NCBI GenBank assembly: GCA_047495785.1 | Contig: JBLDXI010000020.1 | Location: forward strand, 1,798,001 to 1,862,000 | Source of the DNA: Lepidodermella squamata | Taxonomy: Eukaryota; Animalia; Gastrotricha | Length of the DNA: 64,000 bases | Direction: 5' to 3' | Shown here: in pieces, positions 1,340 through 27,035 of the stretch | Layout of the letters: every line of letters starts with the position of its first letter | Numbering within the stretch: position 1 is the first letter of the stretch | Position numbers and translations under genes: made by a program | Notes under the pieces: model-generated | Seen by the model: the letters and a program-made list of their open reading frames with translations, nothing else | What the model was told of the DNA's origin: nothing | Databases searched by the model: none

Positions 1340-1735
1340 CTAGCCGAATACAGCGAATCTGTGGCTGGTCAGTTCCTTGAGATTCTTCTCCATTACAGCG
1401 GGCTTCTTAGCATTTCCAGAGGGCGAATTAGAGTCTGCCGATAATAGCTGCTCTATAGCAGCAGATACCAACTCTTCCTTAGCTTGTTTGGGGTTCGATG
1501 GATGAGGATTCTTTCGGTCCTTTTGCTTGCCTTTGTTCTGAAATCGCAAAGGTGAAAAAATGGCCGTCGGTTTTGGGCTGATTAGCAATTCGCCGCGGTC
1601 TAAAAACCCGGATGACTCATGCGATTGATCATTGACGCTACGCTGTGCTAATTCAATAGCTGGCATTTGCAGTGTAAAATCGAACAGCACCACGCCAAAA
1701 ACACCTATCACCACGATATTTGGCAAGCAGTTCAT
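1340..1735 (-). CDS. Secreted prepropeptide, predicted C-terminal amidated peptide ...ELTSHRFAVF-NH2
   Basis: Hydrophobic signal peptide (IVVIGVFGVVLF), KK site, terminal Gly directly before the stop (amidation donor), downstream AATAAA. Single coding exon. Confidence 0.75.
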   Translation of the reverse strand: MNCLPNIVVIGVFGVVLFDFTLQMPAIELAQRSVNDQSHESSGFLDRGELLISPKPTAIFSPLRFQNKGKQKDRKNPHPSNPKQAKEELVSAAIEQLLSADSNSPSGNAKKPAVMEKNLKELTSHRFAVFG

Positions 1736-2047
1736 GTTTCGCTACTAGAAAATGTGAATATTAAACCACGGGTGTGACATATAGTATTTAAATTCGAAGT
1801 GACCCTTGTGGATAAAATACATTATCGGTTAATTAAAAATGACTGTAGTTTTTATTTGATTAAATTATAACAAGAATCAGTCACGCCCACCGGTCTCAGC
1901 AGACCTTAATTTTATTCGAGAAAGGTGTCGCGCAATAAAATGATGACCTTTTACGATGTAATTTGGACAGAAAAAAACTATTTAAAATTAGAGAACTGTC
2001 TATTATAAAAAATGACCTCGAAAGGTCATGTGACTTTGATTTTTACA

Positions 2048-2515
2048 TCAGCCGATGCGAACCATGCTAATTTTGCGCAAATTTCTCAGAACTCGAGCCA
2101 TGTTGGTCAGCGAGAATGACTCGGCACCCCATTTAGGCGGGTTATTGGCTACTACAGCCGCGCTGCTAGTTGAATTTGTCGCATTTTTCGAGGTCACTTT
2201 CGAGGCCGCCGGCGCACTTTTCGGCGTTGTCGCTGCGGATTTAAACAGGTAACTGCCGCCGAAATCGACACCAGCATCAGCCGCGCCGGTGAAATGATCG
2301 TCGTTGTTGTGCTCTTCGTGGTTATTCTTATTGTTGTTGTTCGAAGTCGGCGCTAAGGAGTCGTAGTCGTAGTACCGCCCAGATGGCGAGTAGGACGATG
2401 AAACAGAATTTTGAGCTTCTTTCCAGTTGGACTGTTCATAGTTATGATCGTCATCGAAAGGCCGCATGAGCGCTGTTCCGAAAACTGGGAGCAGAGATAA
2501 AATTATCCACCGCAT
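2048..2515 (-). CDS. Secreted prepropeptide, GVDFG family, with a CRF/DH44-like amidated C-terminus (...SFSLTNMARVLRNLRKISMVRI-NH2)
   Basis: Signal peptide MRWIILSLLPVFGTA, acidic spacer, GVDFGGSYLF motif shared with paralogues, terminal Gly-stop. Confidence 0.75.
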   Translation of the reverse strand: MRWIILSLLPVFGTALMRPFDDDHNYEQSNWKEAQNSVSSSYSPSGRYYDYDSLAPTSNNNNKNNHEEHNNDDHFTGAADAGVDFGGSYLFKSAATTPKSAPAASKVTSKNATNSTSSAAVVANNPPKWGAESFSLTNMARVLRNLRKISMVRIG

Positions 2516-3575
2516 TTTGTAATTTTTTTTATGAAAAAAATTAGATGGAGTGAGATTTCGCCCGCCATTCTGCCTGATTTTGAAGGTGATTTAATCCCGA
2601 GGATTATACGAGCAACCTCTTGTAGCCTTGTGACGTTCAGAAGCTTTAAATTACAATAACAAAAAAAACTAATTTTTCGAGAAGAAGCGGTGGTGGTTAA
2701 ATCCGGGGATCTAAGTGGTTCTCGATACTTTTCTGATGGGGGAATCACTTTCTGAGAATAGCTTATTGATTAAAAGTGTGGAAATTACCGACTGAAAACC
2801 CGGCAAAAAGCTTTTAGGATCGACCCCGCAATCTTTGTTCGGTATCAAGGGATAATATCAACCGGCAAGATGGTGATCTGGAAAAAATGAAAAGGTCATT
2901 ATTTCATATCGGACTGTTCTCGAATGTGCACCGTATAAAACGAGGGGTAACTTTAGGGAAAGCAATGTTTTTCAGAACTTGAAAATCAGCTTTTACTCAA
3001 AATTTCAACCAGAAGTGGGCAATACGAATCCTGGATGTCCTACAAATTTCGAAAATTTTTCATTTGCTTTGATTTTTGGGAATATGGGCTTTCTGTGAAC
3101 GGCCTCGTGATGAGTTGAAAAATTCGCACTTGAAATGTGGGTCAAATGTTAAAGAACATTTCGTCGCCTGCGCGGACACGTCACCAAACGCCTTTTTGAG
3201 ATCAATCCAGAGAACGCATTTTCTCAACATTTTCTCAACTTTGAGAATCTCGCAACATCCAAATTACCAGTTTGAAATGTCACCGATGCCTAACGGATTC
3301 GTATTTTTTGCGCCAAAGGTAAAAACAAACATCGCTTTTTGGCTTTTTGCGGGCGCCTCGGGTTCGATTCTCTGTGACCACCATGCAGCTTAAATGCTAA
3401 AATTTTCAATTTTTATATTTTACTTATAATCATTATGATGAACCGATTTGCAAATGTTGAGCTCATTTGAGAAGCGCCAAGGCTGTTTATTATTGGGACA
3501 GTTTCGCGCTTATCGTCGTGTATTCGCTCTGAAAATTCACTTGTGAATATTGATATTATAAGTTATTACAATATA

Positions 3576-3955
3576 CCGTACTGCCCGAAAAAAAGCCAGC
3601 CTCAAATAAATGGCAGAGATTAGAGGTCGTTCGAAACAATAAATGTCAGGCCCGAAATAAATGTCAGGTCAATTGCAGGAACTATACTGAAGATCACTAA
3701 TGAGGTAATTATAGCCATTCTGAATGGAGATAATTTCTACTCTTGGCTTATAGTAAGGTCAGGGACCAATTTTTTGGTCAAAATACGTAGAATCTCAGGA
3801 AAATATATACGCCATTGTGGCACCCAGGCAAGTTACTAGTTGGTTCGAATAAATAAATTTCAGGTCCGAAATAAATGTCAGTCCCTTTCAAATGTCAGGG
3901 GTTCATCAGCGTTTGAAAAAAACAAATGTCATGGTTTTTGTTCCGGGCAGTACGG
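3576..3955. mobile_element. MITE, Tc1/mariner (pogo/Tigger)-type
   Basis: TIRs CCGTACTGCCCG(G)AA ... TTCCGGGCAGTACGG flanked by TA on both sides; internal AATAAATGTCAG repeats; no ORF. Confidence 0.8.
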
Positions 3956-4405
3956 TAATTTTTTACGATTTCTGTGTTGGTATTCACTTTTTTTGTGGAC
4001 TTGGCTACATGCTGTCGACTTGGCCTGTTGACTTAGCGAAAATGACCTCGTAAAACGACGATCCCGCAGGACATAGCTCTGTTGATCCCATTTTCGGCGG
4101 CCGGGTATGGGCATGGCACTTGTTTCCCCTCGCTGGCGACCAATTTATGACATATATCAGCTGTTTTTTATTCAAGAAAAATTAGTGACAGATATTTATT
4201 GATAGGGTCCAAAATTATCCGATTTGACACCAGAACTTTAGGTAGATGACAAGCTTGAGGAAAAGCTTTCTTCATGGACTTTAAAGAGTTTCAAAAAAAT
4301 TTTCATTCAAAGATTGCTGATTCTTATGGGAGTCCAAAACGAAAGGCAATGGCAAAACGAACGGCGGGAACTTGAACTTAAATATCCCGCTTTACGGTTA
4401 ACATT

Positions 4406-4696
4406 TTAGAGTGGTGTGAACGGGCTGCTATTTTCCTTGACTGATGCGGAAGAGATTTCGCCGAATTCATCCGAGAATCCGGGGGTGTCGTCTTCTTCTA
4501 GCGTTGTACCAGTATCGCCCTCGAAATCGCTGTAGTAATTCCAATCGTGACGATCAGGGTTGTCTTCGTAAGCTGCAACTTCGCCGGAGCACCAGATTTG
4601 CCGCAAAAAGCCGAAAGTGCAACACGCGGAAACAGCTAAAATGTTCATAAGCATTATTATTTTATTTACTTTCCGCGCACACTCTGCGGCTAACAT
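4406..4696 (-). CDS. Acidic secreted peptide precursor, divergent relative of the GVDFG family
   Basis: Hydrophobic leader; acidic EEDD...DEFG segment resembles EEDDGY...VDFG; TATATAAA about 75 bp upstream; TTTCCAG immediately before the ATG. Confidence 0.55.
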   Translation of the reverse strand: MLAAECARKVNKIIMLMNILAVSACCTFGFLRQIWCSGEVAAYEDNPDRHDWNYYSDFEGDTGTTLEEDDTPGFSDEFGEISSASVKENSSPFTPL

Positions 4697-5150
4697 CTGG
4701 AAATTCCTTCCAGGTTTCCTTGTAATAAACAGGCTGAAATCGAATACTCAGGGCCCAACTGAAGTTGTTTATATAAAGCCGTCATTAAAGGCGTCAACAA
4801 TAATAATAAAGCCATTACGATTAGCGCATTTATGAGAATTTTCTTTCTTCTCGTATGAGAAAATTGAGAATTGAGAAAATATATGAGAACATTTTTGAAA
4901 TTTCTAATTAATTTACTCTTTTGAAGTTTGGAGCTTGAGGGAACACAACCAACAATCATAATAAAAATTTCAGCTAGGGTTTGACTAGGGCATAAAATAG
5001 CGTATTTTTGAGGTTATAAATTTTCCAGGTTGCACTAAAATTCAAACAAAATTATATTCAACATTTTTTCAAAAATAAAAAAGTTGTTGCCGCCTTTCAC
5101 ATTTATTAAAACTGAGAAAACGATATAGGTATTACGATGCTGGACATTGT

Positions 5151-5474
5151 TTACAAAAAGTAGGCCAAATAGCGCGATTTGGCTAGCTTATGAACCGGAT
5201 TTTTGTTGTGCGCGCTTTGATAAAATTTCTGCATGAAAGCATCAGCCGCCAATTTATCGCTGAAAACAGACGCATCGCCGCCAAAATCGACGCCCATGGC
5301 GCCGGCCGATACGTAGCCATCGTCCTCTTCACTGACAGCCGATCGCTCCTGCTCTTCGATGCCAGCATTAGCATTGTCTTCGCTGTAGATTCCGAAGTCG
5401 TCGTAACACGTTGCGCATGGAATCATCGCACAATAAATTGAAACAATTATCAATAAATTTACGTAGAGATGCAT
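5151..5474 (-). CDS. Secreted prepropeptide, GVDFG/DH31-like family
   Basis: ATG at 5474 (MHLYVNLLIIVSIYCAMIPCATC signal); EEDDGYVSAGAMGVDFGG...FSDKLAADAFM; close paralogue of 6011-6328. Confidence 0.8.
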   Translation of the reverse strand: MHLYVNLLIIVSIYCAMIPCATCYDDFGIYSEDNANAGIEEQERSAVSEEDDGYVSAGAMGVDFGGDASVFSDKLAADAFMQKFYQSAHNKNPVHKLAKSRYLAYFL

Positions 5475-6010
5475 CTGAGACACCGCAGTTTTCTGACCTT
5501 TACCGAGGGACAATATTTTATTCCCACGTTTTTGCGAAAAGTGAATTCAACGATACAACTCGGCATCGCAAATATTTTGTTACGCGGGACAATTCCACCT
5601 CGTCGTTTACGAATCCCAAAATTAATGAAATTTTTTTTAATAAAAAGTGACATTATTTCCTGACAGGCCCGAATGCAACTCCTGAAAAAACAAACCATTT
5701 CATCTGTTACCAACCACGCAAATTGTTTAAACTGATATTGAGCGTGGAACTTCTAACCGTTTGTCCTATTCAGAACAATTCATAAAAAATATTGGTAAAA
5801 GGTACAATTTTTTGAGATTTAATCTGTACCAATGCATTTTTCCCTTTAAGCGAAGCACCGAAAAAAAATTCAAATTTTTCGGACTACGAAATACTCGGCT
5901 AACAAATTTTTGTGATCCTGATTCCTTTAGCTATTGTAATATAAATTCTAAAATTTCGAAACAGTTCATTTTTATTGAGAAGACAATAATTAAGTAATGC
6001 TCGACATTGG

Positions 6011-6328
6011 TCACAATAAATTAGCCAAATAGCGCGATTTCGCGAGTTTGTGAATCGGATTTTTGTTATGCGCTTTTCTATTGAATCTCTGCATGAAAGC
6101 ACTAGCGGCCAATGGATTGCCGAAAATGGACGCATCGCCAAAATCGACGCCCATAGCGCCGGCCGATACGTAGCCATCGTCTTCTTCCCGAATAGGCAAT
6201 CGCTCCATTTCAACGCTATTTTGATATTTGTCCTCGGTTCCAAAATCGGTCGCATCGAATTCGTCGTAACAGGTAACCATCGAAATGATTGCTAGTAAAT
6301 TTAGAACTAGGAGCTTTGACCGATGCAT
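6011..6328 (-). CDS. Secreted prepropeptide, GVDFG/DH31-like family
   Basis: Signal peptide; EEDDGYVSAGAMGVDFGDASIFGNPLAASAFM...AHNKNP; C-terminal half nearly identical to 5151-5474. Confidence 0.8.
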   Translation of the reverse strand: MHRSKLLVLNLLAIISMVTCYDEFDATDFGTEDKYQNSVEMERLPIREEDDGYVSAGAMGVDFGDASIFGNPLAASAFMQRFNRKAHNKNPIHKLAKSRYLANLL

Positions 6329-6781
6329 CGAAATTTTTTTATTTTTTCTTAAATGGCTAAAAATATCGTGTAACGGGAACTTAGGATATATCGTAGTCGC
6401 GCGATCTCACAAAATTTTATTGCAGGGGCGATGGCAATGATTAATCTATTTTTCGGTCAAACGCAAAAATAGACCACGCGAAATAATATCCTCATTTCCC
6501 CCACGCGCTACTATGTATGTGATGATATTAAATTATTTTACATGTTTCCTTCCTGAAAAATGCACTGTCTATAATACAGTTATCTATTCCTCGGACATCC
6601 TAATATGCGTGCTCACTCAATCAGAATAAATGAAATATTCCACCTTAACTTTTTTATTGTAATTCAAACCGCACATTTCGCTACAAATAAAGAGCCACAA
6701 AATTCGCGAAAATCATATTATTATTATTATAACCGTGAGAGTTTTATATTCAAATGAGTGATGACAATTAGAATTAAAAGC

Positions 6782-7108
6782 CTAGCGCCGTCGACGTCCG
6801 CTCAACTTGACGCCATTGAAACTTCGCTGATTGCTGCCGATGTTCTGGCGACGGAATGAACCGAATAGGCTGTTTTTGTCGGAGATAGACCCGCCAGCTC
6901 CGAAATCGACACCGAAATCAACGCCAACTTCACCCTGGCCCTGGTAGCCGTCGTCCATTTCAGCGACTCGAGGTTCCTGATCATGGCTCGTACCCTCGCC
7001 ATCGGAAGTCAACGCCTCATCGCCTTGGTAGAATGCCTCGTCATCCTGAGCGTAAGACACAGCTACAAAGCAAGCGACTGCTAGCAAAACGTTCAAATAT
7101 CGGTTCAT
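6782..7108 (-). CDS. Secreted prepropeptide, GVDFG family (motif doubled), ends GRRRR
   Basis: Signal peptide MNRYLNVLLAVACFVAVSYA; DDGY...GVDFGVDFG; terminal G-RRRR amidation/cleavage signal. Confidence 0.8.
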   Translation of the reverse strand: MNRYLNVLLAVACFVAVSYAQDDEAFYQGDEALTSDGEGTSHDQEPRVAEMDDGYQGQGEVGVDFGVDFGAGGSISDKNSLFGSFRRQNIGSNQRSFNGVKLSGRRRR

Positions 7109-8548
7109 ACTAAAGCAGCTATAGTTGGAAAAAACCAGAAAATTATTTTGATTTTTTTAGAAAAAAAATTTCGCACGGCCACTAAACTAGGATATTTAAA
7201 AGGAATAAATCCCGCCTTGAGTGCGCTCTTATCCCTGATTTTTGGGGTGTGTGAAGTATTTATATTGAATTTATTTCTAATTGAATTCTCGCGCTTAGTT
7301 TACCCGCCTCGCCACGCGAATGAAAAATCATCAATCATCAATCATAATAAAAGGGGCGGGCCAGCAATTACTTCACAGACAAAACGGTGGTATATATCGA
7401 TCAATTTTTAAAATTTTCAAAACGTCAACTTCTCAATTCAGGGTATTTCCATCGAAACGAGAACACAAGGAGTAAAAATAGCAGATTAACATTAAGTTTT
7501 AATAAATATTTTCTAAAATAAGGAGCCGTGATCGAAATTATTTTTACGCGCACGGAGGCGGCCGCCAGATCATTAGACTGGCCGCTATCAAGAGTGAACT
7601 CATTCCTAGTTTGCGTGCCTGTTTTCGCCTCGTTGGACGGTTAAAATTGCGAGGCGAAGAGGCGTTTTCTAACGTAAGAATATGTAACGACTTTTTTCCG
7701 AAAAAATCAGTTAAAAAATGCGGTGAATGAGCTGTGGTAAAAACATTTTTCGCGCTTAAATCTGAGATAAATAATTAGTCGCCTAATTCATGGTTTAATT
7801 TCCTAACTTGCGGTGATCCAACGCATCCTGTCACATGGTATACTAGACAGCCGTGGATGCCAAGACTTGTTTTCCGAGGTAGAGAAAACGGAAATTCATC
7901 ATTAAGGTCATGAATGGGATATTGAGACAAATTAAAGACCAACAAAGTCTACCATCAATTAAAATCAGTTCTGTTGAGTGGCATAAAAGAACTTTTAATT
8001 CAAAATTATTGATCTGATACTCCACCTTTTGGCGTGATTCAAAAAGTGGGAAGGCTCCTTGGCAATCGTCTCTGGATAGCCCCAGAGGAGACCCAAGCCT
8101 ATATAGAGACATTTCCAATGACACAGGTCCTATAACTGTGCAAGCAGCCATCTGGGAACACTTTTTCATCCTACGTTTCGTTGCGTAAAGAAAATCCCTT
8201 TTATCTTAAATTAGCTGGATTTATGAAAGAAATTGTGGGTGAAAACCGCTAAAATATGATGAGGTGATTTTTTTCCAGATTTGACCCGAAAACTGACAGC
8301 GGTAAAATGTAAAAAACCCACCGAATTTGATGTTTAAACTTCCTTAAAATTCCCTCCTTGAATTATTAGAGAGGCTTTCCATATGTGAGACGTTAAAAAA
8401 TCAGGAATTTATAGGGTTGAACGAGTCTTAACTGAAGAGTTTTTACGGCAGTGCTCTGCAACTAAAACTGATATTAATTGCTAAATGAACCAAGCGAAAT
8501 AGCTCAATATCGCACTTTTTCGACCATAATTCCAATAAAATGCGCATC

Positions 8549-8616
8549 ACCGGCTTCCGCAAAATCTCTTAATGGGCTCCTCTCCCCCATACTTTGATGA
8601 ACTCAAGCTTTGCCAT
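8549..8616 (-). pseudogene. Possible frameshifted remnant of a glutathione S-transferase first exon
   Basis: Reads MAKLEFIKVWGR/EPIK/FAEAG across two frameshifts, similar to the GST N-terminal pattern KLxYFxxRGRAEPIRxxFAxAG. Very short. Confidence 0.25.
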
Positions 8617-8807
8617 TAGACTTCCGCTTTTTTCAAAAAAAAAAACTTTCCTTTTTCGCTGAAATAAAAAATAAAAAAACCGCACTGCTTTATTTTTTCA
8701 TTCTGAGATTTTCAATAAGAATTTATTTCAAGTATAATTCTGCATTAAACTGCGATGCTAAAATATGAAAAATGGTCGTCGAACCGCAGCAGTTGAATTG
8801 AATTATT

Positions 8808-9047
8808 TTATCTGCCGAAAACCAGTCCGCGAGCTTGCCCGTGCATTATCCTTCGCCGCAGGCTGTCGTAATAAGCCGGCTTCATTCTGCCCTGCGAAGG
8901 CAGGTGGAAATCGATGGCGTGGTCCTCGAGCCAATCTCGTTTCTCGATCGGATACTTCCATAAAACCTGACCATTCGCGACTTCTATGAAGCCGAGGAGT
9001 ATCAGCAAAAAGATGGGTAAAAAGAATGCGATCCTGATTTGGTTCAT
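8808..9047 (-). CDS. Secreted prepropeptide yielding a ~40-aa amidated peptide DWLED...HGQARGLVF-NH2
   Basis: Signal peptide, KR convertase site, terminal GR; C-terminus shared with 16021-16305. Confidence 0.8.
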   Translation of the reverse strand: MNQIRIAFFLPIFLLILLGFIEVANGQVLWKYPIEKRDWLEDHAIDFHLPSQGRMKPAYYDSLRRRIMHGQARGLVFGR

Positions 9048-9183
9048 TTGAAAATAATCCTATAAAATATTTTTCTCTGGTTTTATTCCTCAAAATTATT
9101 CTTAAAAATACATCCGTGTAAGCAAATATTTGGCTATCATTATTCTCAGATTATAAATCACCGCGCTAGTTTTATCTACGTCA

Positions 9184-9390
9184 CTAAAATCGAGGTGAGC
9201 CGCGGCTGAGGCCGTCGATGAGTAATCGCCGCAGTTTGGCTTGTTTACGAGCCGTATTTCCGTAGCTCTTCAGGTCGCGCTCGATGTCGAGGATATTGTC
9301 ATGCTCGCAGTTGATAGAATCGATGAGACAGATGACCATCACTGTCAGGACAACAATTAATAGCAACTGACTCAACACCCTCAGCGCCAT
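9184..9390 (-). CDS. Secreted peptide (68 aa), LRR..G..RG..F family, non-amidated SPRF end
   Basis: ATG at 9390 (MALRVLSQLLLIVVLTVMVICLIDS); LRRLLIDGLSRGSPRF aligns with LRRRIMHGQARGLVF. Confidence 0.7.
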   Translation of the reverse strand: MALRVLSQLLLIVVLTVMVICLIDSINCEHDNILDIERDLKSYGNTARKQAKLRRLLIDGLSRGSPRF

Positions 9391-9718
9391 GTATATAGAT
9401 GCAGCTCCTTTTAAAAATTCAGAATGAAAATGGAACAGAAACAATGATTTTTGTGTCACACGATGGCGGCAAAACAAATCAATCAATGATAATAACATAT
9501 CCCTACTCTCGCTTTTCAGGGTTAAATTATTTAGAGAAATGCATGGCATAATTCCGCCGACGCTTGAGTTGCATCGCCCCATGGGAAGACAACAATCATC
9601 AATAGGGAAAATCTCCGCAAAAAAATTGGATTAAAATTAATTAATTGTCCCGATTAATCATGTGGGTTGAATTTTTATTTCAATGAATAATTTCCAAAAT
9701 AAAAATGCCTCGAGTCTA

Positions 9719-10114
9719 TTATTTTCGACCCCAGCTATTCGACATTAAATTGTAGAAGACTGCTTGAATTTTTTCAGGCTTGATTTTGGCCTGACCAAAT
9801 TCAGACGTTCCATTAGCTAGGCGACGAATATTTTCCAAAACGCGTTGTTGCTTTCGACGATTTAACAACAGCAACTGGCGCTGGGTCAGTTTTTGATCGA
9901 CTTGATCTATAAGCCGAGCCTGTTTCCTCGTTAGCTTAGAAGCCAGCTTCATAAATTCATTGTTCAGATCGGACATTTTGAGCTTGCTCGACAGAGATTT
10001 GCCTGGGGCTCGATTTTCAGACCGACTTTTCCTCGTGTTAGGGCTCGAAACGGTTGTAGATAGAACGAAAGGCGATAAAAAAGTAGCCATCAAAATTAAG
10101 GTTAATAAATTCAT
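9719..10114 (-). CDS. Secreted prepropeptide, W-amide family (FYNLMSNSW-NH2)
   Basis: Signal peptide, helical pro-region, terminal WGRK; paralogue of 11561-11968; TATATAAA upstream near 10245. Confidence 0.85.
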   Translation of the reverse strand: MNLLTLILMATFLSPFVLSTTVSSPNTRKSRSENRAPGKSLSSKLKMSDLNNEFMKLASKLTRKQARLIDQVDQKLTQRQLLLLNRRKQQRVLENIRRLANGTSEFGQAKIKPEKIQAVFYNLMSNSWGRK

Positions 10115-11560: not shown

Positions 11561-11968
11561 TCAACGACCCCAACTATTCGCCATCACATTGTACCAGACG
11601 GCTTGAACTTTTTCAGGGTTGATCTTGACGTTGCCCATCCCCGCCATTCCACTCGCCAGTTTACGAAGATTCTCAATGATTTTCTGGTTTTTGCGCTGAA
11701 TATCAGTTGGTGGCTGTGGTTGCCGAACGGAGAGCTTCTGTTCGATTTGTTGCAGCAATTGCTCCTTGTTGCTTGCCCGTGAAGCCGCTGATGCTAACGG
11801 AATTTTGTTCTGTAGCACAGACATGGTGTTTCTGGTTGCTCGGTGAACAAAATCAGTCTCGCTCTGCTTCAAATTTGCGTTTTGCGAGCCATCGTCGAAA
11901 AGTGGCGTTGTTTTTGTAAACGGGAGAAAAACGGCTGCTGAAGCGATGAATAACAAAAAATTCATCAT
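11561..11968 (-). CDS. Secreted prepropeptide, MIP/AstB-like W(X)7W-amide (WYNVMANSW-NH2)
   Basis: Signal peptide; terminal WGR; KIxPEKxQAV[WF]YNxMxNSWGR shared with 9719. Confidence 0.85.
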   Translation of the reverse strand: MMNFLLFIASAAVFLPFTKTTPLFDDGSQNANLKQSETDFVHRATRNTMSVLQNKIPLASAASRASNKEQLLQQIEQKLSVRQPQPPTDIQRKNQKIIENLRKLASGMAGMGNVKINPEKVQAVWYNVMANSWGR

Positions 11969-14662
11969 AAAATTCTAGATAAAATTCAGAAATTTTAAAA
12001 TTATTCTCAGCATAAAAATGAGGTTTAATCAAGCAATATTGTTGGCCATTTTGAAATATTAATTAATAAAGTAGAACGGGTATACGAGGAGGCCATCTCA
12101 CTTCCTATATTGATTAAAGACGGGCGAAGATGCGGGGGTAATAACATGGATTCAAGAAGCAGAAATTTAACTCAGGCATGCATATCAAAGACAGCATCGG
12201 TTTCAGGCTTCGATTAAAACATCATCTCCGATGATTTGTTCCCAATCGATAAATCGTCCTTTTGCTACTGCATACTATTCGCTACGATTGAAATTAGAAT
12301 TATAGGAGCAATGGTGACCCTCTATATATTTTTTAACTATAACATTTTTTAGCTCGGCTAATGTTTGGGCTAAAACATTTCGAATGTCATACGGCTCCAG
12401 ACGAGATTCAACGACTTGAGTGATGCCGCCTACTCTGATATTGAATTAACAAGCCAGGAATAATTGATTTATAATTGCAACACGTTTTTGGCGCTTGAAA
12501 AACCGGAACAAAAAGCACTTACCGTTCCCGACCTAATTTCGCGCAGTCGATGATACGATATACTTATAATTGACTATTTAATTAGACGAACATTAGCGGG
12601 GGAAAGTGGGGTGTGCTGAATTTCCAGGAAATCACAAGAGAATTGATGAAGTGGAACGATGATTGACTTTCCATATTCACTATGCCCTGGACCGATTTCT
12701 CAGGAAATTTCTCGGGAATTCCTAAGGTTTAGACCTCTTGCATGACCCTTCTTAACGGTGTTCCTATATCCTCCTAAAAAATGCGAAGCCATGAAAAGAA
12801 GGCTACTACTTTTCTACAAATGATGTTTTTACCAAGCGCGATCCCGAACTGTAGAAATCCCTAAACTGGAAATCGACTGGGTGTGTGAGAAAAAGTAATA
12901 AAATGTTAAGTGATGCATATTTATTATATAAGCGCGCGCATTATCTCATTGCGCAGCCTAATTTTTCGGAAGCCGCGAAATTCGCGCATTAGATAATAGA
13001 CCAGACAGATTACCCGTGGGTAATTGATCGGAGAAATTGACCGAGCCTGTGTTATATTTATTTAAAAAGAATCCGGTCTCGTTTTATTGTCCAAATGGCG
13101 ACCTTTTTATCGGCCTCGGATAAAGAGCATTTTACGTAAAAAAAAACAGAATATCTTTTAGCGGAACAAAATCTGCTTGTTGCGGAACCTAATTTTAGGT
13201 CGCTTTCCGAATATTTCTACGAATTTGAGGCAAATTATCAACTCTGTAGTAAAGGATGATTCTTATACAGAATTCTACGCTGAATTGTAGGATGATTTAT
13301 TATAAATTCATAAATTTATTATAGGTTTCAGGCCTATTGAATAATTAATTCAATGGAAATATGGAAAATTTGATTTCCCTTATGGCTGAATCAACTTTTT
13401 AAGACGGACTTTTTATTTTATTTTTTTTACGCTATTTTCATAGGGGTATGACCCTTTAACATCCCAAAAAGTGGCTCCAGATACTGCGCATGTAGGAATA
13501 GGATTACTCTATGGCTTGTTCGTTGTTCACAAGCAAAATAGCATAGTTGGGCACGAACCAGCAATTTTCGTTCGTTACAACAAAAGTTCGTTATATATGT
13601 GTCGTACCGTTATGAGCAATCCGCCCCAATTGGCAATTGGGTTACCTTAAAGAGAAATTGCTCTAAAAATCCACTTTTTAAGCAAATTAATAATTCCCTA
13701 AATAATTATTTCCCAAAACGATACATCGATGACCGATAATCGTGGTATTTTCAATTTATTCTCTACTTATTGTCACTTTTTGGCATTAATGGCTGGAAAT
13801 TTCAAATAATACTCAAATTTAAATTTTCTTAAAGGATGTCAACCCTAGCAGTTTCATTTGTGGTTCCCCAGTTCTATAGTATGTGATTCCCCTTGCTTGA
13901 ATTTTCAGATTCCTTTTTCCCACAGAAGTTTATCCTAGAGACTCTTTCAAGCTCCATGAGATACGATTGATGTGAACTATAGGGGGTTGGGTTTACTTTT
14001 TAGACTGATCAATTGCTTTAGATGACGAAATCAATCAGTCGGAACTAGGATCATTATCTTGAACCTTGAAGGTTCAGCAAAAGTTCCAGCTGCCAACTAT
14101 GACCTATTAGTCGGTTTTTGGCGCTTGAACTTCGGGAAAGCTTTCTTATATCTCTATCAACCCACCGAGTTAGAGATTTAATCAGTGAGCAACCTTTTTA
14201 GGCTACAGGAGGAAATATTCGGTGTTTCTAGATGCTGTCAATTATTGTCCTTAGCGGTATCTTAATATCTCCATCTAGGCATATTGCCTCATGGGTTATC
14301 CCAATTGCCTTTTGGGAGGATCGCCTAAAACGGTACGACATATGCAGAATCGTTCCTTATAACGATTCTTCAGTGTATATCGATCTAGAGACAACCACCT
14401 CAGTGACTCAGCTTGACTCGCCGTAGCCCAATTTTCCACGTACAGGACATTAGGATTTCCTCATACACTTTGACCTCGATATTTTATTATTCGATATAGA
14501 TATACCAATAAATAATAAATAATGTACCAATTACAATTGAACACCAAATTTCGTTGGCGAATAGCCAATAAAAAAGGATGTTACATGAAGTTAACGGCCC
14601 TCGTTTTTTTACATTAAATGGTACCAGAAATCTTTGTTTTTGTTGCCAACCAGATTATCTGC

Positions 14663-14959
14663 TTAATTGCCGAGCTTAGTTCGTAATGCGTTCATAAAAC
14701 CCGGTCGCAGCTGACCTGGCGCAATCCGGTTCGAACCTTCAGCTACCATTGCCAATTTGTGCTGCAAAAACGGCGAATTCGTTCTGTGAGAATTGAGGGA
14801 AGCATAGCGAGGCTGGTTTAAACCGATGGGCCGTGATAGTAACAGGTTACGTTGGGCTTCAGACCCTGAGACCCCAACAGAGTTCGACTCTGAATAGGGA
14901 AAACATAGGACGCCTTGAAGTAAAATCACGGCAACGAGAAAAACTTTTAATTCAGCCAT
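14663..14959 (-). pseudogene. Truncated duplicate of 15377-15793
   Basis: ATG at 14959; a deletion of about 39 bp and a TAA cut the ORF before the still visible ADNLVGNKNKDFWYHLM* tail. Confidence 0.7.
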
Positions 14960-15376
14960 GTCTCTGGGGAAAAATCTAAAATATCGATGAAAGGAGCAAT
15001 TTAAGAGCAGGAAGCCCATTGAAAACACCAAAATTTGTTCCACTGAAAGTAAGACCCAAAAACCTCTACTTTCTCGATTAATCTCCAAAAGCCTTGAAAA
15101 CTAAATCAAGATAGTTTCACAATGCCTTCAGTTCCGCAAAGCCCAAATTGTCTAAGATTTTTGACAAGTTTTTAGCTGCGAACACACCGATATGAAGCTG
15201 TAAAATGAAAATTATATTGAGCTAGAGACAACCACCACAGTGACTCAGCTTGACTTGCCGTGGCCACGCAGAGGAAATTACGAGTTCCTCACACTTTGAT
15301 CTCGTTATTTTATTAATCGATCGATGTACCGATACAACATTAGAGGATAAATTGTGTTGTGTTGGCAAAGAGGCTG

Positions 15377-15793
15377 TTACATGTTGTTAACAGCCCTTGT
15401 ATTTGCCATTAAATTGTACCACAAATCTTTGTTCTTGCTGCCGGCCAGATTATCTGCTTCCAGCTCCTCAGCCTGGTTTCTGTTACTAGCCGCCCCGATA
15501 TTGCCGATCTTAGTTCGTAGTCCCTTAATAAAACCCGGCCGTAGCTGACCTGGCGCAATCCGGTTCGAACCTTCAGCTACCATTGCCAATTTGTGCTGCA
15601 AAAGAGGCGAATTAGTCCTGTGAGAATTGAGGGAAGCATAGCGAGGCTGGTTCAAACCGAAAGGCCGTGATAGTAACAGGTTACGCTGGGTTTCAGACCC
15701 TGAGACCCCAACAGAATTTGACTCTGAATGAGGGAAACATAGGACACCTTGGAATAAAATCACAAGAGCAAGAAACACTTTAAATTCAGCCAT
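15377..15793 (-). CDS. Secreted prepropeptide, degenerate W-family member (LWYNLMANTRAVNNM, no amidation signal)
   Basis: ATG at 15793 (MAEFKVFLALVILFQGVLC); WYNLMAN matches 9719/11561 but SWGR is lost. Confidence 0.75.
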   Translation of the reverse strand: MAEFKVFLALVILFQGVLCFPHSESNSVGVSGSETQRNLLLSRPFGLNQPRYASLNSHRTNSPLLQHKLAMVAEGSNRIAPGQLRPGFIKGLRTKIGNIGAASNRNQAEELEADNLAGSKNKDLWYNLMANTRAVNNM

Positions 15794-16020
15794 ATCTCTG
15801 GGGAAAAAATCTAAAAAAAATTTCGATGAAAGGAACAGGAAGAGACAATTGAATTTCAAACAAGGACGATGGCTGATGCAATTTCCTAAATTAGCTGCAC
15901 ATGAATAGGCCCTTATAATATAGTTTTGGGAATTGTGGGTGAAAAATTGATTCATTTATTTTTCGTCTGGCTTCTAATTTAAGACATAATATTTGATTAT
16001 AGACATTTCAGAGTTTGCCA

Positions 16021-16305
16021 TCAGCCAAAAACTAGATCCCGCGCCTGGCCGTGATTGATGAGCCGCCGCATCGACTCCCACGAATACGATTTGTAGCCTC
16101 TAGGTGGCGTTGTTCGAAAGTAAACCCGTCGCCTGTTGCTCAGGCTGCCGCCTGGCCAGAAATTTTCATTGATAGCCATTGTTACAGGAACCATAACAAA
16201 CCCGCCGCCGCCTTCCATATCATCTTCAACGTTATTCCGCGAGAAGCCTGGATCAGTTTTGGCTAAGGGAACCACGAGGATGAAAATCAAAATAAATCGC
16301 AGCAT
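16021..16305 (-). CDS. Secreted prepropeptide yielding a ~33-aa amidated peptide VYFRT...HGQARDLVF-NH2
   Basis: Signal peptide, RRR cleavage site, terminal Gly-stop; paralogue of 8808-9047. Confidence 0.8.
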   Translation of the reverse strand: MLRFILIFILVVPLAKTDPGFSRNNVEDDMEGGGGFVMVPVTMAINENFWPGGSLSNRRRVYFRTTPPRGYKSYSWESMRRLINHGQARDLVFG

Positions 16306-16472
16306 ATTTTGAACTCAAGCCAATAAATGAGTCGAAAGCATTGACCAGTGACCACTCGTTCAATTTTACGGCTCGGAAAATTTCATTTCCTGATAAATCT
16401 GAAGTATATAAGATCGTTCAATTTGTTTATTTCTTTAAAAATGAAAAGATGGTGAATAATACAAATAATAAA

Positions 16473-16793
16473 TTATTTTCTGCCCCAACTATCGGCGATT
16501 TTATGCCATTTTTGAACGTCACCGCCGTTTTTCAGTAGTAGGCGGGCTTTTTGCGACGATTTTTGATCGCCAGTTGATTTGCGGCTGCTCATTTGATTGT
16601 TCGAATCGTTAACAAGACTTTGCAGGGCCTGGATGTTTTTCAAATCTTTCGATAAATTGTTGGCTCTTGTCGGGACAACCAATAACCGCGAACCTTCACA
16701 ACAGGTGTCGAGCGCCATGAAAATCGCAAAGAATCCTAATGCGTACGAAGTGGCGTGCATTGCATGAAGTTTAAAAATACCTAAAATTGACAT
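16473..16793 (-). CDS. Secreted prepropeptide, MIP-like W(X)6W-amide (WHKIADSW-NH2)
   Basis: Hydrophobic leader (start may be the Met at 16760); terminal WHKIADSWGRK. Confidence 0.85.
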   Translation of the reverse strand: MSILGIFKLHAMHATSYALGFFAIFMALDTCCEGSRLLVVPTRANNLSKDLKNIQALQSLVNDSNNQMSSRKSTGDQKSSQKARLLLKNGGDVQKWHKIADSWGRK

Positions 16794-17631
16794 AAAATTC
16801 TGGTAATTATATTTTGGGAAAATATCTCCTAATTAATTGGTAAATAGTGCAGTAGCATAATAGTTTTGAGTTTCAACTAATAGTTCCGCCCACTGTATTT
16901 TTCGCAAAAAAATAGGAATATTTGTATTTGGGTGTTTACCGATGTGACAATTACTATCGTCTGTTGACAATATTATTCAGTGGTCATTCGAATGAAATGC
17001 CATGACAGCCAAGTTGATCTGGGACGCTTTGAAGCCGATATAAAATAGGTCCGAAGATGCACACCTTTTATTTAAGGTTCTAGTACTAATTTTCCCGACT
17101 TTCCATCCTATAGGATTTTATATTTTAGCAACCAGGTACCCTCATGAATGTCTAATGTTATAATGCCGGCTCACTAGACTGGTGAAATCGGGAAAATCAC
17201 TGATTTTCAAAATCGATATTGGAAATCGATATCGGCTATGCGGGAAAAATACGCATGATAGTGATGAATTAAGATTCGCAGGAGATCGGGAAAACTCGAA
17301 AAGCTAGGAAGAAGTCTTGTACTGGAGCCTCAAATGTAGTGCTGGAACCCACGAAGTGTCAGGTTGCACTTACCCACGTCCTCTACAAAAAATGGCAGCC
17401 CGGTTCCGAAAGTGTAGGGGCGGCATCGGCTAGAATTTCGGACGCATTGAAACTTGTACCAAGATGTTTAATTCGATTTCTTTGGGACCTCTTTTTATAC
17501 TATTATCATAGTCAAATTTATGCATATCGAATTTTCACCATCTTTCATCTTGCGTGGAAAAAAGTACGAAACAACGCTAATTTTTATTATTTTAGCAACA
17601 TTAGCCAAAAATAAATTGACCGAAGTTGATA

Positions 17632-17985
17632 TTATTTTCGGCCCCAGCTGCTGCCGATCACGTGCCACATCGCGTTGTCGGCAGGCAAGTCGCCGTTTTG
17701 TTCCATCCACGCCGGCCATTTGCCATTGATTGATTGATGCACCAATAATTTCGGCGGTTGAACTTTGATTATTATAGCTGGCACCATAGGTCGGCGAGCA
17801 GAAGCTAGTCTCAAAGATTCGTTGTCATTTTCTGAAAAGATCGAAAGCTCCTGATCTTTTGCCGCATTTTCGATTTCACTGACAAGATATGCTTCGATTT
17901 TAGGTAAAAATGGCGCAGATCTGGTCATCGGCATTGCGAGAGAAATCAAAGAAATAGCGAATAATGATAATGATAATCGCTTCAT
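17632..17985 (-). CDS. Secreted prepropeptide, MIP-like W(X)6W-amide (WHVIGSSW-NH2)
   Basis: Signal peptide, RR site, terminal WGRK; recent duplicate of 18438-18797. Confidence 0.85.
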   Translation of the reverse strand: MKRLSLSLFAISLISLAMPMTRSAPFLPKIEAYLVSEIENAAKDQELSIFSENDNESLRLASARRPMVPAIIIKVQPPKLLVHQSINGKWPAWMEQNGDLPADNAMWHVIGSSWGRK

Positions 17986-18437
17986 TTGAAATGTGTGTAT
18001 TCTTTCAACTAAAATTCTCCAAGTTTTAGATGTTTATAGCTGGAAGTACATAAAGCTTGAATGTAGACTGTTTCGAATAAATTATTTGTCATATCCATTA
18101 TTTTCTGAAAGAGACCTATTTTTAATCGATATATAAAAAATTGTCGTTTTATTATAGCGCAACTTGTCCTCCACCTACTCAAGATTCCCATCTATATAAC
18201 CTTAATATAATACAGGGATTATAAACAATTAAAAATTCAAAAAATCGCCTGCTAAATTTGGGCGTGGTAAATTTGGACAATAAGTCATGTGATTCAATAT
18301 TCGACGCCTGTACAAGTTAGAACGGACGCACTCCTCGCACCTGTAATTTTGAGGACTCGGAAATTTCGAGTAAAAAGAACGCAGCGAACAAAAAACTCAT
18401 TTTTATTTGTGCGCTGTAATAATAATCGAACGCAATA

Positions 18438-18797
18438 TTATTTTCGGCCCCAGCTGCTGCCGATCACGTGCCACATCGCGTTGTCTTTGTTGTCGGCAGG
18501 CAAGTCGCCGTTTTGTGCCATCCACGCCGGCAATTTGCCATTGATGATTGACTGAGGCGCCATTAATTTCGGCGGTTGAATTTTGATTATTATAGCCGGC
18601 ACCATCGGTCGGCGAGCAGAAGCTACTCTCGAAGACTCGTTGTCATCTTCTGGAAACAGCGAGAGATATTTCGCCTCATTTTCGATGTCACTACTGACAA
18701 GATTTGCTTCGATTTTAGGTAAAACTGGGGCAGATCTGGTCATCGGCATTGCGAGAGAAATCAAAGAAATAGCGAATAAAAAGGACAATCGCTTCAT
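18438..18797 (-). CDS. Secreted prepropeptide, MIP-like W(X)6W-amide (WHVIGSSW-NH2)
   Basis: As 17632; upstream flanks are also duplicated (unit about 0.8 kb). Confidence 0.85.
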   Translation of the reverse strand: MKRLSFLFAISLISLAMPMTRSAPVLPKIEANLVSSDIENEAKYLSLFPEDDNESSRVASARRPMVPAIIIKIQPPKLMAPQSIINGKLPAWMAQNGDLPADNKDNAMWHVIGSSWGRK

Positions 18798-19173
18798 TTT
18801 ACTATAGATAATCTTTTTTCAACTACTATTAGTGATTATCAAGTCAGACGACTGTGTTTCCAATAAGATGAAGAGGCTGGGGAAGTCAGTTATTTGTAAT
18901 ATCCATTATTTTCTTGCACTCTGAGAAAAAATAATCGATATATTAAAAATTGTCATTTTATTATAAAGCGCAACTTGCCCGCCGCCTACTTAAGATTTCC
19001 AACTATAGCCGGTAATTTAATACAGTGATTAAACGATAAAAAATGTAGAGAAACAGCTATAATGTCGTACCAAAACGGAATTAATTACGCTAAGTAATTT
19101 TTCAAAGTGAGGAAGAATCGCATTAATCACAAGTCATCTCCAGAAATTCGTCATTTTCCTGGAAATTCTGAAT

Positions 19174-19473
19174 TTATTTTTTGCGGCCCCAACTGCCAGC
19201 AAATAAGTGCCACATAATGACATCTTTGCGCTCGAGGGGAGCAGTAGCGTGCTCAGATAATTTTCGACCTGCTTTATTGCGTCCAAATTTTATTTCGATC
19301 ACAGGTATCAAAGGTCGACCCGTCGCATTATTCAGGCCGCTGTGATATTGCTGCTTCAAAGCCGTATTTACCATTTCAACGAGCTGAGATTGCCGCTCGA
19401 AGTGACTGGTCGAAAAATCACATTTCAGTGATAAAATTAAAATTATGGAAATTAAATTCTTAAAATGCAACAT
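19174..19473 (-). CDS. Secreted prepropeptide, MIP-like W(X)6W-amide (DVIMWHLFAGSW-NH2)
   Basis: ATG at 19473, signal peptide, RK site before DVIMWH, terminal GRKK; RPLIPVIEIK resembles RPMVPAIIIK of 17632/18438. Confidence 0.85.
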   Translation of the reverse strand: MLHFKNLISIILILSLKCDFSTSHFERQSQLVEMVNTALKQQYHSGLNNATGRPLIPVIEIKFGRNKAGRKLSEHATAPLERKDVIMWHLFAGSWGRKK

Positions 19474-19689
19474 AATAATGAAATGTCCGGAGGGTATTTG
19501 TTTCAATTATTTTTGTACTTGAAATGGGTGCCCGTCAAGTTTCACATTTATTTTTGTCCAGCACAAATGTTTAGATAGACAAAATCGCTGCCAATATTTA
19601 CAGGTATCCATAGCCTGATTTTTTTATTGATTACTTCTTATTATCAAGTGTATAAAATGCCGTCGTTTAATAAATTTAATAAAACATTA

Positions 19690-20025
19690 TTAGCGGCCCC
19701 AACTGCCGGAAAAAACATGCCACATGATGACATCTGTCCGGTTTAGCGGCTTCATCCGCTCGCCATTCCTGTTTACAAGATAAGTCTCTGCTTTGCCAAG
19801 TTTTCGGCCGTTGTTGTTATTAATATTATTACTCGGCTGTTGTTTCGCGGCGAGTTGAGCGGCGGCTTTGTTCAATAATTGTTGCTTGACCTTCTCCAGC
19901 AGCAGAGGTCGTCGTTGCAGCAGTTTCTCGGCTGAATTTCGGTTCGAAACTGTGCCGTCGCAAATTTGCAGAATAACAACCCATAAAATTAACAGCAGCC
20001 AAAGCAGGCTATGATAATTTCTCAT
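19690..20025 (-). CDS. Secreted prepropeptide, MIP-like W(X)6W-amide (DVIMWHVFSGSW-NH2)
   Basis: ATG at 20025, Leu-rich signal peptide, terminal WGR. Confidence 0.85.
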   Translation of the reverse strand: MRNYHSLLWLLLILWVVILQICDGTVSNRNSAEKLLQRRPLLLEKVKQQLLNKAAAQLAAKQQPSNNINNNNGRKLGKAETYLVNRNGERMKPLNRTDVIMWHVFSGSWGR

Positions 20026-20972
20026 TGTAGACAAATTGATTTTCTAAATGAAAATCAAAAGCAGCAATAATTTTTCGGGGTTGATGATTAGTGATTTAAA
20101 TCTGCGGTAATGCGTGAAATAATCGAAACAACTAACAATCACATATTGCGACCGGATAATTGACGGCGGAATGAAAATCCCGTACTAAAACGGCAGCTGT
20201 ACCTATAAGGAAAATCGACTTTTATAGGTTTACGTGCTGTTGCGGAACAAATTTCGAGTGGACCTGGCGTCTATTTTTACGAAACGCCTACAGGTTTCAA
20301 CGCCAATTAATGTAATGCATTTCTACCACTCCTTAAAAATGTCGGCTAAAATAGGGGAATAAATCTTTTAATTTAAAATTAGGTACTAATTGTCGTCAGA
20401 ATTCGCCATGAGCCATGGAAATAATAGGAAAATTTTAATAAAATTATTAAACAATTACGAAAAACTGGTCTGTTCAAAAAGCGAAAAATCGAATTTTTTC
20501 GCCATATATCGCAGTCAGAGCTTCAACTATACTATTGACCCTATTTTACGACCCGTGGAGAAGTTATCATCCGAGCTTTATCACGGTCATCACGCGATCT
20601 TCTCCGCACATGATTATCCGCAATAATTGGGTAATAATCGAAAAAAAACAAATTGAGCCTGAGCCATATTATATCTTAAAAAATATTAATAATGACAAAT
20701 TTGAAGCTTTCAGGGTTTGCGGGGCGGGACATCAAGAGTAAGATTTTGTCTACATCTGAAATTTTCATTAATTATATATTGATCATTTCCTCGTGGGAGT
20801 TCCCCATCATTTTTCTTTCGCCATTTTTTCGAAGATGCGGGACACGAAACAGAGGTTGGAAATGTATTCAAAAATTTATTATTCACTACAAAATAATTAG
20901 AAATATAATAGTATGGTGGACACATGTATCATCCAGTCAAAACAACTCTCATTTCCGAATTTCGTTCCAGTT

Positions 20973-21230
20973 TTACTTCTTGCCCCAAGTTTCCGCCAAA
21001 CTGTGCCAGCGTTCGTTAGTATTCTGCACATTGGCGATCTTCTGGCGGCCAGCGCGGGCGACAAGTCGTGGAGCCTCGAAAACAATGCTATCACCGCCGT
21101 CGCTTACAACAAGAGCGTCGTTATCTTCATCGAACAGAACAGACCGTTTTGATGGGTTAGCGTTTGCCATTGAAATTATGACGAAAATTGAGGCAAGCCC
21201 CAGAGTCACTAGAAGAGTCGACGAAGCCAT
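20973..21230 (-). CDS. Secreted prepropeptide, MIP-like W(X)6W-amide (WHSLAETW-NH2)
   Basis: Signal peptide, KR site, R-WHSLAETW-GKK; the most canonical MIP-like member. Confidence 0.85.
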   Translation of the reverse strand: MASSTLLVTLGLASIFVIISMANANPSKRSVLFDEDNDALVVSDGGDSIVFEAPRLVARAGRQKIANVQNTNERWHSLAETWGKK

Positions 21231-22303
21231 TTTCGCTTTAATAATAAAAAATCTAAAAAAATTGAAAAATTATTGAAAAAAACAAGCGTGAAAAATAGGA
21301 ACGTTCCAAGCGATATTAACGATTTTTTAAGTGGGATTTTTTTAGCAATGACCCTCAAGTTATCGAATGAAAGAGTGGCAAAAAAACTAAAGAGGGGGCT
21401 CGATTTTATTTCCCTGGAGATTATACAACGCCGTTATCGTTTATATATAGGGTATATCGGAACGCCAAATCGGCTTTTTTGTGCCATTTAGCAAATAAAC
21501 GCCTCCTTCTGCCGATGTCTGAATAGGAAAATTAAATAAGGATGGATATATCGTTTAATCAAAGTTGACGCGTCTAAATATTAACATTATATTTAAACCC
21601 TCTATTTATATTTACTCATTCCTATTATGCGGCGTGGTATATGATAATGAGGGCAACAAAAATATTTAAAAAAGCGCGTTAAAAAAATCGGCCAGTTTAA
21701 CCTTCAAATATGGGAAATATATACCCCAAAACTGATTATCATGGATACGTCAATTTTCATCACAAGATTACTCGGTATAAATCTGGCTTATCGATTATGA
21801 CGATTAAACTGTTTCTAAGACTTCAATAGGTGATCAATACTATAGCACCGGGCATAGGCTTAAACCGCCTCTTGAGGGTGGGTCTTGTTTCTTCCGCCTG
21901 GTAATTGCGCTATCGAGTTAATAATATAGTCTGCAAAATACAATGCAAGGTGTGGTTGGTAATGAGGTTCACACCTTGCACGCAAAAAAGTAGGATTAAT
22001 TGAGAAAAAAACAACACAAAATTTGGCAAAAGTTCGAGAAATTTTCAAAAGTGCCAATCGACCTGCTGATTTGCGCGCCAGCAATCATTCAATTAAGGTG
22101 AGAGCAATAATTATTTATGCAGCACTGGCGGGGGTGTATAACGAACATTTGTCGGAGGGGGTGTCTGGGCTGTCTGTTAAATCACGAGGTTGTTTTTTTC
22201 AAATTTAAAAATATCTGCAGCAGGCATGTTTTTACTTCCACATCTCTGTCCGAGTTTTACAACGCAACGACTTGATTTAAAAAAAAAGTCAGAAAAATAG
22301 TGT

Positions 22304-22657
22304 TTATCTTGGCACGAATGGGCGCGAGACCAGGCGAGCCCATCGCCGCTTTTGCTTCCCGCCGGCAATCGCATCAGGCGCTGCGATTTGATTGTGCTGC
22401 TGAACCGGTCGTTTCTTAGACTGTTGCGGCGCGGCTGTTGTTGACTCACCTTTAACCACCGGTGGCTTCGGAAGAGTCATGACAAAATCATTCGTATGGC
22501 GGCTGTTCGCCATGAAAGTTTTCAAACGAGTCAGGCGCGTTCGGGCTTTCGCCTCAGAATAAAACGCCGAGCCGTAAATTCCGCCAGAAATCGCTAAATC
22601 GTGAAGTATAAAAACAGCCGCGACATAAATAGCTACCGCACTTGAAAAAACCGCCAT
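22304..22657 (-). CDS. Secreted prepropeptide ending KRR-WARLVSRPFVPR
   Basis: Signal peptide, KKR and KRR sites; same strand and architecture as the rest of the array. Confidence 0.7.
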   Translation of the reverse strand: MAVFSSAVAIYVAAVFILHDLAISGGIYGSAFYSEAKARTRLTRLKTFMANSRHTNDFVMTLPKPPVVKGESTTAAPQQSKKRPVQQHNQIAAPDAIAGGKQKRRWARLVSRPFVPR

Positions 22658-26908: not shown

Positions 26909-27035
26909 CATTCCGTGCGTTTTACTTTTATGTCACTCGAAATTTTGGAATGTTTATATATCTTTTAATAAATATATGATAACACTTTGAGAAATGTTTT
27001 ACTGAGAAATATTAGATCATCCCTTTAAGCCCAAA

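Follow-up and report, generated by a model that had tools for sequence, protein, structure and literature searches.

Twenty small precursor genes in tandem on one strand of a Lepidodermella squamata contig: candidate precursors of amidated signalling peptides

Does a tandem run of small genes for secreted precursors encode the animal's own signalling peptides, or products released to act on another individual? The question is raised by positions 1340-22657 of a 64,000-nt stretch of contig JBLDXI010000020.1 of the gastrotrich Lepidodermella squamata (the whole stretch is called the window below), where metazoan DNA with a G+C content of about 40% contains 20 complete minus-strand open reading frames (ORFs) of 68-155 aa, each with a signal-peptide-like start. 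The start chosen was the Met preceding the hydrophobic core, and the lengths depend on that choice. With a probability of roughly 0.55, the locus is read here as a lineage-specific birth-and-death array of precursors of the animal's own amidated signalling peptides (neuropeptides or hormones), in contrast to an earlier, sequence-only reading of the same DNA, which had proposed a peptide cocktail aimed at a host, prey or mate.

The array and its genes

When a simple signal-peptide criterion was applied in all six frames, positions 1001-23000 yielded 20 minus-strand and 2 plus-strand ORFs, and the other 41 kb of the window yielded 2, a UDP-glycosyltransferase (UGT) among them. The null, consisting of 100 Markov shuffles, gave a mean of 0.42 and a maximum of 2, i.e. 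the real count was about fifty times higher, and all twenty ORFs of the sequence-only reading were present at their positions. Ends in Gly, or in Gly followed by Arg/Lys, were found in 13 of the 20 ORFs against a shuffle mean of 0.01; the amidation-type ends noted earlier are thereby upheld, with their number corrected from 12 to 13.

The signal AATAAA was located within 250 nt past the stop codon in 19 genes (control 39%, P ~2e-7), and a pyrimidine-rich, acceptor-like AG site within 45 nt before the ATG in 12 (control 15%, P ~5e-6). Owing to the enrichment of both signals, the ORFs are taken to be transcription units of their own. Processing of their 5′-ends, either through an intron in the untranslated region or by trans-splicing, is probable, and therefore only the coding part is demonstrably unspliced. 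Intronless genes had been thought to set the array apart: the coding parts are indeed uninterrupted, yet this state is not unique to the array, since the coding region of the neighbouring UGT gene is likewise uninterrupted. Neither Rfam nor tRNA scans of the window returned anything, and no convincing k-mer shared upstream of the array genes was found. The array genes are confirmed as real.

On the basis of all-against-all BLASTP and family profiles, the genes were grouped into families A (g14-g19, contiguous), A′ (g9, g10), B (g2, g4, g5, g6), C (g7, g13) and D (g11, g12), with g1, g3, g8 and g20 as orphans. By BLASTP, the subfamilies mostly lie in blocks, as had been claimed. The genes, and the first gene of the adjoining SDR cluster, are as follows.

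g1, 1340-1735, minus strand: 131 aa, orphan fitting no subfamily profile, ends in Phe-Gly (amidation donor)
g2, 2048-2515, minus strand: 155 aa, family B (GVDFG core), ends in Ile-Gly
g3, 4406-4696, minus strand: 96 aa, acidic orphan without amidation signal
g4, 5151-5474, minus strand: 107 aa, family B, free C-terminus strongly conserved with g5
g5, 6011-6328, minus strand: 105 aa, family B, duplicate of g4
g6, 6782-7108, minus strand: 108 aa, family B, ends in Gly and four Arg
g7, 8808-9047, minus strand: 79 aa, family C, tribasic site followed by a predicted 11-residue Phe-amide peptide
g8, 9184-9390, minus strand: 68 aa, orphan, signal peptide followed by a 40-residue product ending in Arg-Phe without Gly
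g9, 9719-10114, minus strand: 131 aa, family A′, F-x7-W-Gly-Arg-Lys end
g10, 11561-11968, minus strand: 135 aa, family A′, W-x7-W-Gly-Arg end
g11, 14663-14959, minus strand: 98 aa, family D, without amidated end, frame stopping 40 codons before that of g12
g12, 15377-15793, minus strand: 138 aa, family D, tail a decayed A′-type peptide without the Trp-Gly-basic end
g13, 16021-16305, minus strand: 94 aa, family C, dibasic site followed by a predicted 12-residue Phe-amide peptide
g14, 16473-16760, minus strand: 95 aa, family A, Lys followed by W-x6-W-Gly-Arg-Lys
g15, 17632-17985, minus strand: 117 aa, family A, W-x6-W-Gly-Arg-Lys
g16, 18438-18797, minus strand: 119 aa, family A, recent duplicate of g15
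g17, 19174-19473, minus strand: 99 aa, family A, dibasic site, 12-residue W-x6-W peptide, Gly-Arg-Lys-Lys
g18, 19690-20025, minus strand: 111 aa, family A, W-x6-W-Gly-Arg
g19, 20973-21230, minus strand: 85 aa, family A, Arg, 8-residue W-x6-W peptide, Gly-Lys-Lys
g20, 22304-22657, minus strand: 117 aa, orphan adjoining the SDR cluster, without amidation signal
SDR gene (retinol-dehydrogenase-like), 22985-23869, minus strand: first of the neighbouring tandem cluster, positional anchor outside the array

End peptides, selection and the origin of the array

Family A ends in W-x6-W-Gly with one to three basic residues (six genes), and family A′ in W/F-x7-W-Gly-Arg(-Lys), where g10 has the first Trp and g9 has Phe in its place. 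The first Trp directly follows a basic residue in g14 and g19; in g16-g18, the basic residue is a few positions further upstream. The predicted W-amide peptides are 8-13 residues long in seven of the eight genes of families A and A′; g15 has no basic residue nearby, for a predicted peptide of 25 residues. Seven genes have Ser before the amidation-type Trp and g19 has Thr, and the first Trp is followed by His. According to a six-frame scan, each ORF carries one W-x6/7-W motif. After the signal region, 19 of the 20 genes have zero or one Cys, with none in any predicted end peptide, and the net charge of the end peptides varies from -2 to +2. The GVDFG core of family B is in turn located mid-protein, without flanking cleavage sites.

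By the rules of established prohormone processing, the signal peptide would take each product into the secretory pathway, convertases would cleave at basic residues on either side of the C-terminal peptide, and a carboxypeptidase would trim the trailing Arg/Lys, after which the exposed Gly would be turned into a C-terminal amide. One short peptide would be released per gene (8-13 residues in most W-amide members), and the W-x6/7-W-amide products may act on receptors of the MIP (allatostatin-B) type, i.e. sex-peptide-receptor-related G-protein-coupled receptors (GPCRs), presumably within the animal itself. AlphaFold models built on the alignments of families A′ and B (pLDDT 58 and 51, pTM about 0.2) showed isolated helices and no compact fold, which is consistent with unstructured prohormones and weak evidence for them, because both alignments are shallow. 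A second conserved module, consisting of Arg-Pro, a hydrophobic stretch and Lys, was seen mid-precursor in g15, g16 and g17 (17.6-19.5 kb), and in g17 it is followed by Gly-Arg; some members may therefore yield a second amidated peptide.

Selection was estimated as the ratio of nonsynonymous to synonymous substitution (dN/dS, Nei-Gojobori) on five paralogue pairs, with the last 20 codons taken as the C-terminal peptide. The per-region comparison, which the sequence-only reading had in view, gave values below 1 and lowest in the mature peptide: dN/dS lay at 0.17-0.53, the C-terminal peptide and the signal region showing its lowest values or no change at all, and the last 20 codons had 0.07-0.47, or no change at all, across the five pairs. 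The pair g15/g16 was 80% identical (dN/dS 0.53, dS 0.14) with identical last 20 codons, g11/g12 was 88% identical (dN/dS 0.21, dS 0.29), and g4/g5 was 56% identical (dN/dS 0.28, dS 0.70) with a dN/dS of 0.07 in the last 20 codons. The pairs g9/g10 and g17/g18 were saturated overall, and their C-terminal peptides gave 0.27 and 0.18, respectively. Purifying selection centred on the signal and the end peptide is the pattern of neuropeptide precursors, not that of venoms.

The dS values of g15/g16, g11/g12 and g4/g5 bear out the recent duplicates of the sequence-only reading, and the duplicated units are about 815-860 nt with flanks included. The pseudogene that it had listed was not recovered: a translated search of the region returned no further copies beyond the twenty ORFs and no separate frame-broken copy, and the nearest thing to one is the decayed tail of g11/g12, both of which are under purifying selection. 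Growth of the array nevertheless shows birth-and-death evolution, as had been suggested, in its fresh duplicates and in the decayed g11/g12 tail.

This tail merits closer description. The seven-residue string defining the g9/g10 end peptide occurs three times in the six-frame translation (4e-4 expected), the third occurrence being the tail of g12, and the DNA beyond the stop codon of g11 is still alignable to that tail. Family D therefore descends from a W-amide-type gene. It is conserved along its whole length, with a dN/dS of 0.11 in the former spacer, and to judge from these alignments it has apparently lost the W-amide end and moved the constraint to that spacer. Unequal crossing-over may have enlarged the array as a whole, about 0.8 kb at a time, from a W-amide gene already situated beside the SDR cluster; the copies would then have diverged, with the end peptide lost from the g11/g12 lineage and another part of the precursor becoming constrained. 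The origin of new neuropeptide families is poorly documented, because precursors outrun homology. At least five families, at various stages, are found together at this one locus, i.e. fresh duplicates, old paralogues alike in the end peptide only, and the post-loss lineage of g11/g12, which would be a rare direct record of one peptide family born from another.

No Pfam family was assigned at E≤1 to any of the 20 proteins. Exact look-ups of 19 members, with the UGT as control, in a collection of 15 billion proteins gave no match; the animal is thus unsampled in that collection, and the look-ups are silent on annotation elsewhere. A word-based search of 5.8 billion clustered proteins for homologues of g15 was empty, and an exhaustive profile search with the six W-x6-W members (1.84 billion proteins) gave no true match; one marginal profile match, corresponding to the spacer inside a 1131-aa protein, was judged spurious. 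A motif of 10 residues is too short to reach significance in libraries as large as these.

The SDR genes beside the array, for which the long first-exon ORF only was used as query with exons not joined, had their best matches (53-63% identity) in ENA metagenome proteins, with named animals at about 50%. DNA of a relative was obtained from the ENA samples ERZ23486787 and ERZ27333047 (environmental metagenome). The SDR on its contig L001 is 78% identical to the array-adjacent SDR in a local comparison. On contigs L003, L004 and L005, a same-strand signal-peptide ORF of 96 aa, which ends in Arg-W-x6-W-Gly, lies downstream of four tandem SDR genes, and after it come a ribosomal protein S17-family gene, a GTPase and Med15. 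The gene is built like those of the array, with a TATA-like box, an acceptor-like site, a single ORF and AATAAA. Of its protein, only the end motif is alignable to the array genes, and g19 is the array member nearest to it in form. Since the same motif and the same SDR-adjacent position are found in the relative, a W-amide gene beside the SDR genes predates the split of the two organisms.

One W-amide gene is present at the SDR locus of L003-L005. The closest orthologue of the array-adjacent SDR is on contigs L001 and L002, both of which stop immediately past that gene, and the relative could therefore hold a larger array. A scan of JGI metagenome DNA with the SDR returned only distant contigs (≤50% identity, mostly high-GC) without peptide ORFs. 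On L001, positions 2838-7466 contain several exons of Cys-loop ligand-gated channels, and this neighbourhood is unlike that of the window.

Alternative readings and the surroundings of the array

Several observations weigh against assigning the array to the animal's own signalling peptides. Among endogenous neuropeptides, a set of twenty such genes in 21 kb is unusual; secreted effector families are more typically arranged in this way. The amidation signal is absent from 7 of the 20 members, the family profiles tie none of the four orphans to any subfamily, and the spacer of g15/g16 is fairly relaxed (dN/dS 0.65). Canonical MIP precursors contain five to seven copies, compared with the one peptide per array gene. 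Neither a known MIP precursor nor a named neuropeptide family was recovered by the Pfam, word-based or exhaustive profile searches, and the family assignment therefore rests on a short motif.

The array is large and one-stranded, each gene has a single peptide, several families that look unrelated occur beside orphans, and no homologues were found in the databases; all this would also suit a gland-made cocktail that acts externally, on the GPCRs of another individual, as a venom, pheromone, seminal allohormone or host-hormone mimic. A precedent exists in the Drosophila male sex peptide, which acts on the MIP receptor (PMC6380545). This explanation is nevertheless unlikely, as selection is purifying rather than diversifying and strongest on the mature peptide, a cysteine framework is lacking, the motif and its genomic position are conserved in the relative, the window shows no sign of parasitism or of a venom apparatus, and the relatives come from an environmental metagenome. 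Positive evidence for the host-, prey- or mate-directed cocktail of the sequence-only reading was not found. An equally improbable variant derives such a cocktail from an ancestral endogenous W-amide gene, repeatedly copied and diversified; it would then be a far larger, independently evolved counterpart of the use that the fly sex peptide makes of the MIP receptor. Gland expression, if true, would make the locus a new case of neuropeptide genes recruited to act on other individuals.

The seven members without an amidation signal, the conservation of a mid-protein core and a free C-terminus in family B, and the whole-length conservation of family D would be natural in small secreted proteins without a signalling role (adhesive, mucus or egg-coat proteins), in which Gly-basic ends are incidental. 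Such proteins are quite unlikely as an account of the array, given that 13 Gly(+basic) ends stand against 0.01 expected, that conservation in families A, A′ and C is concentrated on the end peptide, and that no fold was predicted by AlphaFold. Host-defence (antimicrobial) peptides are in turn encoded in several invertebrates by tandem arrays of small secreted, often amidated products, and the array shares this layout, product size and type of end. However, its end peptides are short and, by their net charge, not strongly cationic, and the W-x6-W spacing, common to the paralogues and the relative, speaks for recognition by a receptor and against an attack on membranes, which leaves a defence function very unlikely. 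Chance ORFs in AT-rich non-coding DNA, for which nothing but small size and the lack of database matches could be cited, can practically be dismissed in view of the excess over shuffles, the strand bias, the polyadenylation signals, dN/dS below 1 and a motif conserved in a second organism.

The surroundings of the array are of the detoxification type, with SDR, UGT and glutathione peroxidase genes. At least eight tandem retinol-dehydrogenase-like SDR genes occupy positions 22985-41008, seven on the minus strand and one inverted at 40121-41008, each with a long first-exon ORF, an intron of about 60 nt and a short last exon; introns in the window are about 45-65 nt. The intronless UGT gene (25241-26908, plus strand) encodes 555 aa with a signal peptide and a C-terminal membrane anchor. 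Its divergence is very strong: the Pfam E-value is 1e-19, and the word-based search returned no protein at E≤1e-20. Two tandem glutathione-peroxidase-like genes (28460-30290, minus strand; Pfam GSHPx), with Cys at the active-site position and tiny introns, form a 1.1-kb repeat within the SDR cluster. A dispersed repeat of about 115-170 nt is located between SDR paralogues in both orientations (32513-32684, 35178-35349, 37435-37606 and 41803-41920; 86-96% identity), and a 189-nt near-perfect inverted repeat with a 28-nt loop (32683-33088) resembles a miniature inverted-repeat transposable element.

Beyond the cluster, two divergent nuclear hormone receptor genes were identified on the minus strand (43153-43854 and 56077-57026). 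No PDB match was found for the ligand-binding domain; the weak best PDB match of the zinc-finger domain was to DNA-binding domains of the steroid-receptor type, and in its first zinc finger the residues Cys-Glu-Ala-Cys-Lys-Val were read as an unusual P-box. A hAT-family transposase survives as remnants (DUF4371 and hAT dimerisation domain) at 46244-49518 on the plus strand, in at least three separate ORFs with no single intact frame. Taken by themselves, the short introns, the acceptor-like sites ahead of start codons, the divergent receptors and UGT, and the detoxification genes suggest a small invertebrate that evolves fast; chaetognath, rotifer or nematode-like lineages would suit them partly, and the published chaetognath genome shares tandem duplication and trans-splicing, which is no proof for this DNA.

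Comparison with known peptide families

The generic features of prohormones are present in the array, with a signal-like start throughout and the Gly(+basic) ends described above, and the end motif alone is common to its subfamilies and to the relative. DH31 is a peptide of about 31 residues with a Pro-amide end. The likeness to DH31 that had been proposed for the array was not supported, as Pfam gave nothing at E≤1, none of the members has a Pro-Gly end, and the GVDFG core has no cleavage sites beside it; nor was that to CRF/DH44, with no Pfam match at the same threshold for any member and no defining ends. The orphan g8 is like the NPY/NPF precursors in having a peptide of about 40 residues right after the signal peptide and an Arg-Phe end. 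It was rejected as a member of that family, for it has no Gly as amidation donor (Arg-Phe stands directly before the stop codon) and no Pfam match.

Nematode nlp/cnc defence-peptide clusters and venom peptide arrays are similar to the array in their head-to-tail order, local duplication and orphan sequences. The products of those clusters are Gly/Tyr-rich or cysteine-rich, and often fast-evolving or infection-induced. The array differs from them in having no such composition and a peptide end under purifying selection; it lacks both the cysteine scaffold of venom arrays, as its predicted end peptides are free of Cys, and their diversifying evolution, as the last-20-codon dN/dS stays at or below 0.47.

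The closest resemblance is to MIP/allatostatin-B (C. elegans MIP-1, i.e. NLP-38, and the insect MIPs), which likewise have secreted precursors with Gly-basic after Trp. MIPs are defined by a C-terminal W-X5-8-W-amide, a length of 9-12 residues, five to seven copies per precursor and GPCRs of the sex-peptide-receptor type (PMC6380545), and MIP systems are protostome-specific (PMC8557429). The motif is found in g14-g19 (X6) and g10 (X7), with Phe for the first Trp in g9, and the predicted lengths agree with those of MIPs in seven of eight genes. The likeness to MIP claimed earlier thus stands at the level of the motif for six to eight genes, the other blocks being orphan families. In the W-amide superfamily, the residue before the amidated Trp is usually small and aliphatic, whereas the Ser/Thr of the array is small and not aliphatic. 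The single MIP gene contrasts with six to eight separate tandem genes in the array, in which MIP-type peptides would be encoded one per gene and not in a single multi-copy precursor. Families A and A′ are, as far as their sequences go, MIP-like in motif and length, with membership of the MIP family not proven.

The Drosophila sex peptide is comparable to the W-amide genes of the array as a single-peptide gene with two spaced Trp residues and as a ligand of the MIP receptor. It is the product of a single gene and contains a disulfide but no amide, unlike the array members, which are cysteine-free in the end peptide and predicted to be amidated. For a MIP-receptor ligand delivered from outside, sex peptide is the precedent.

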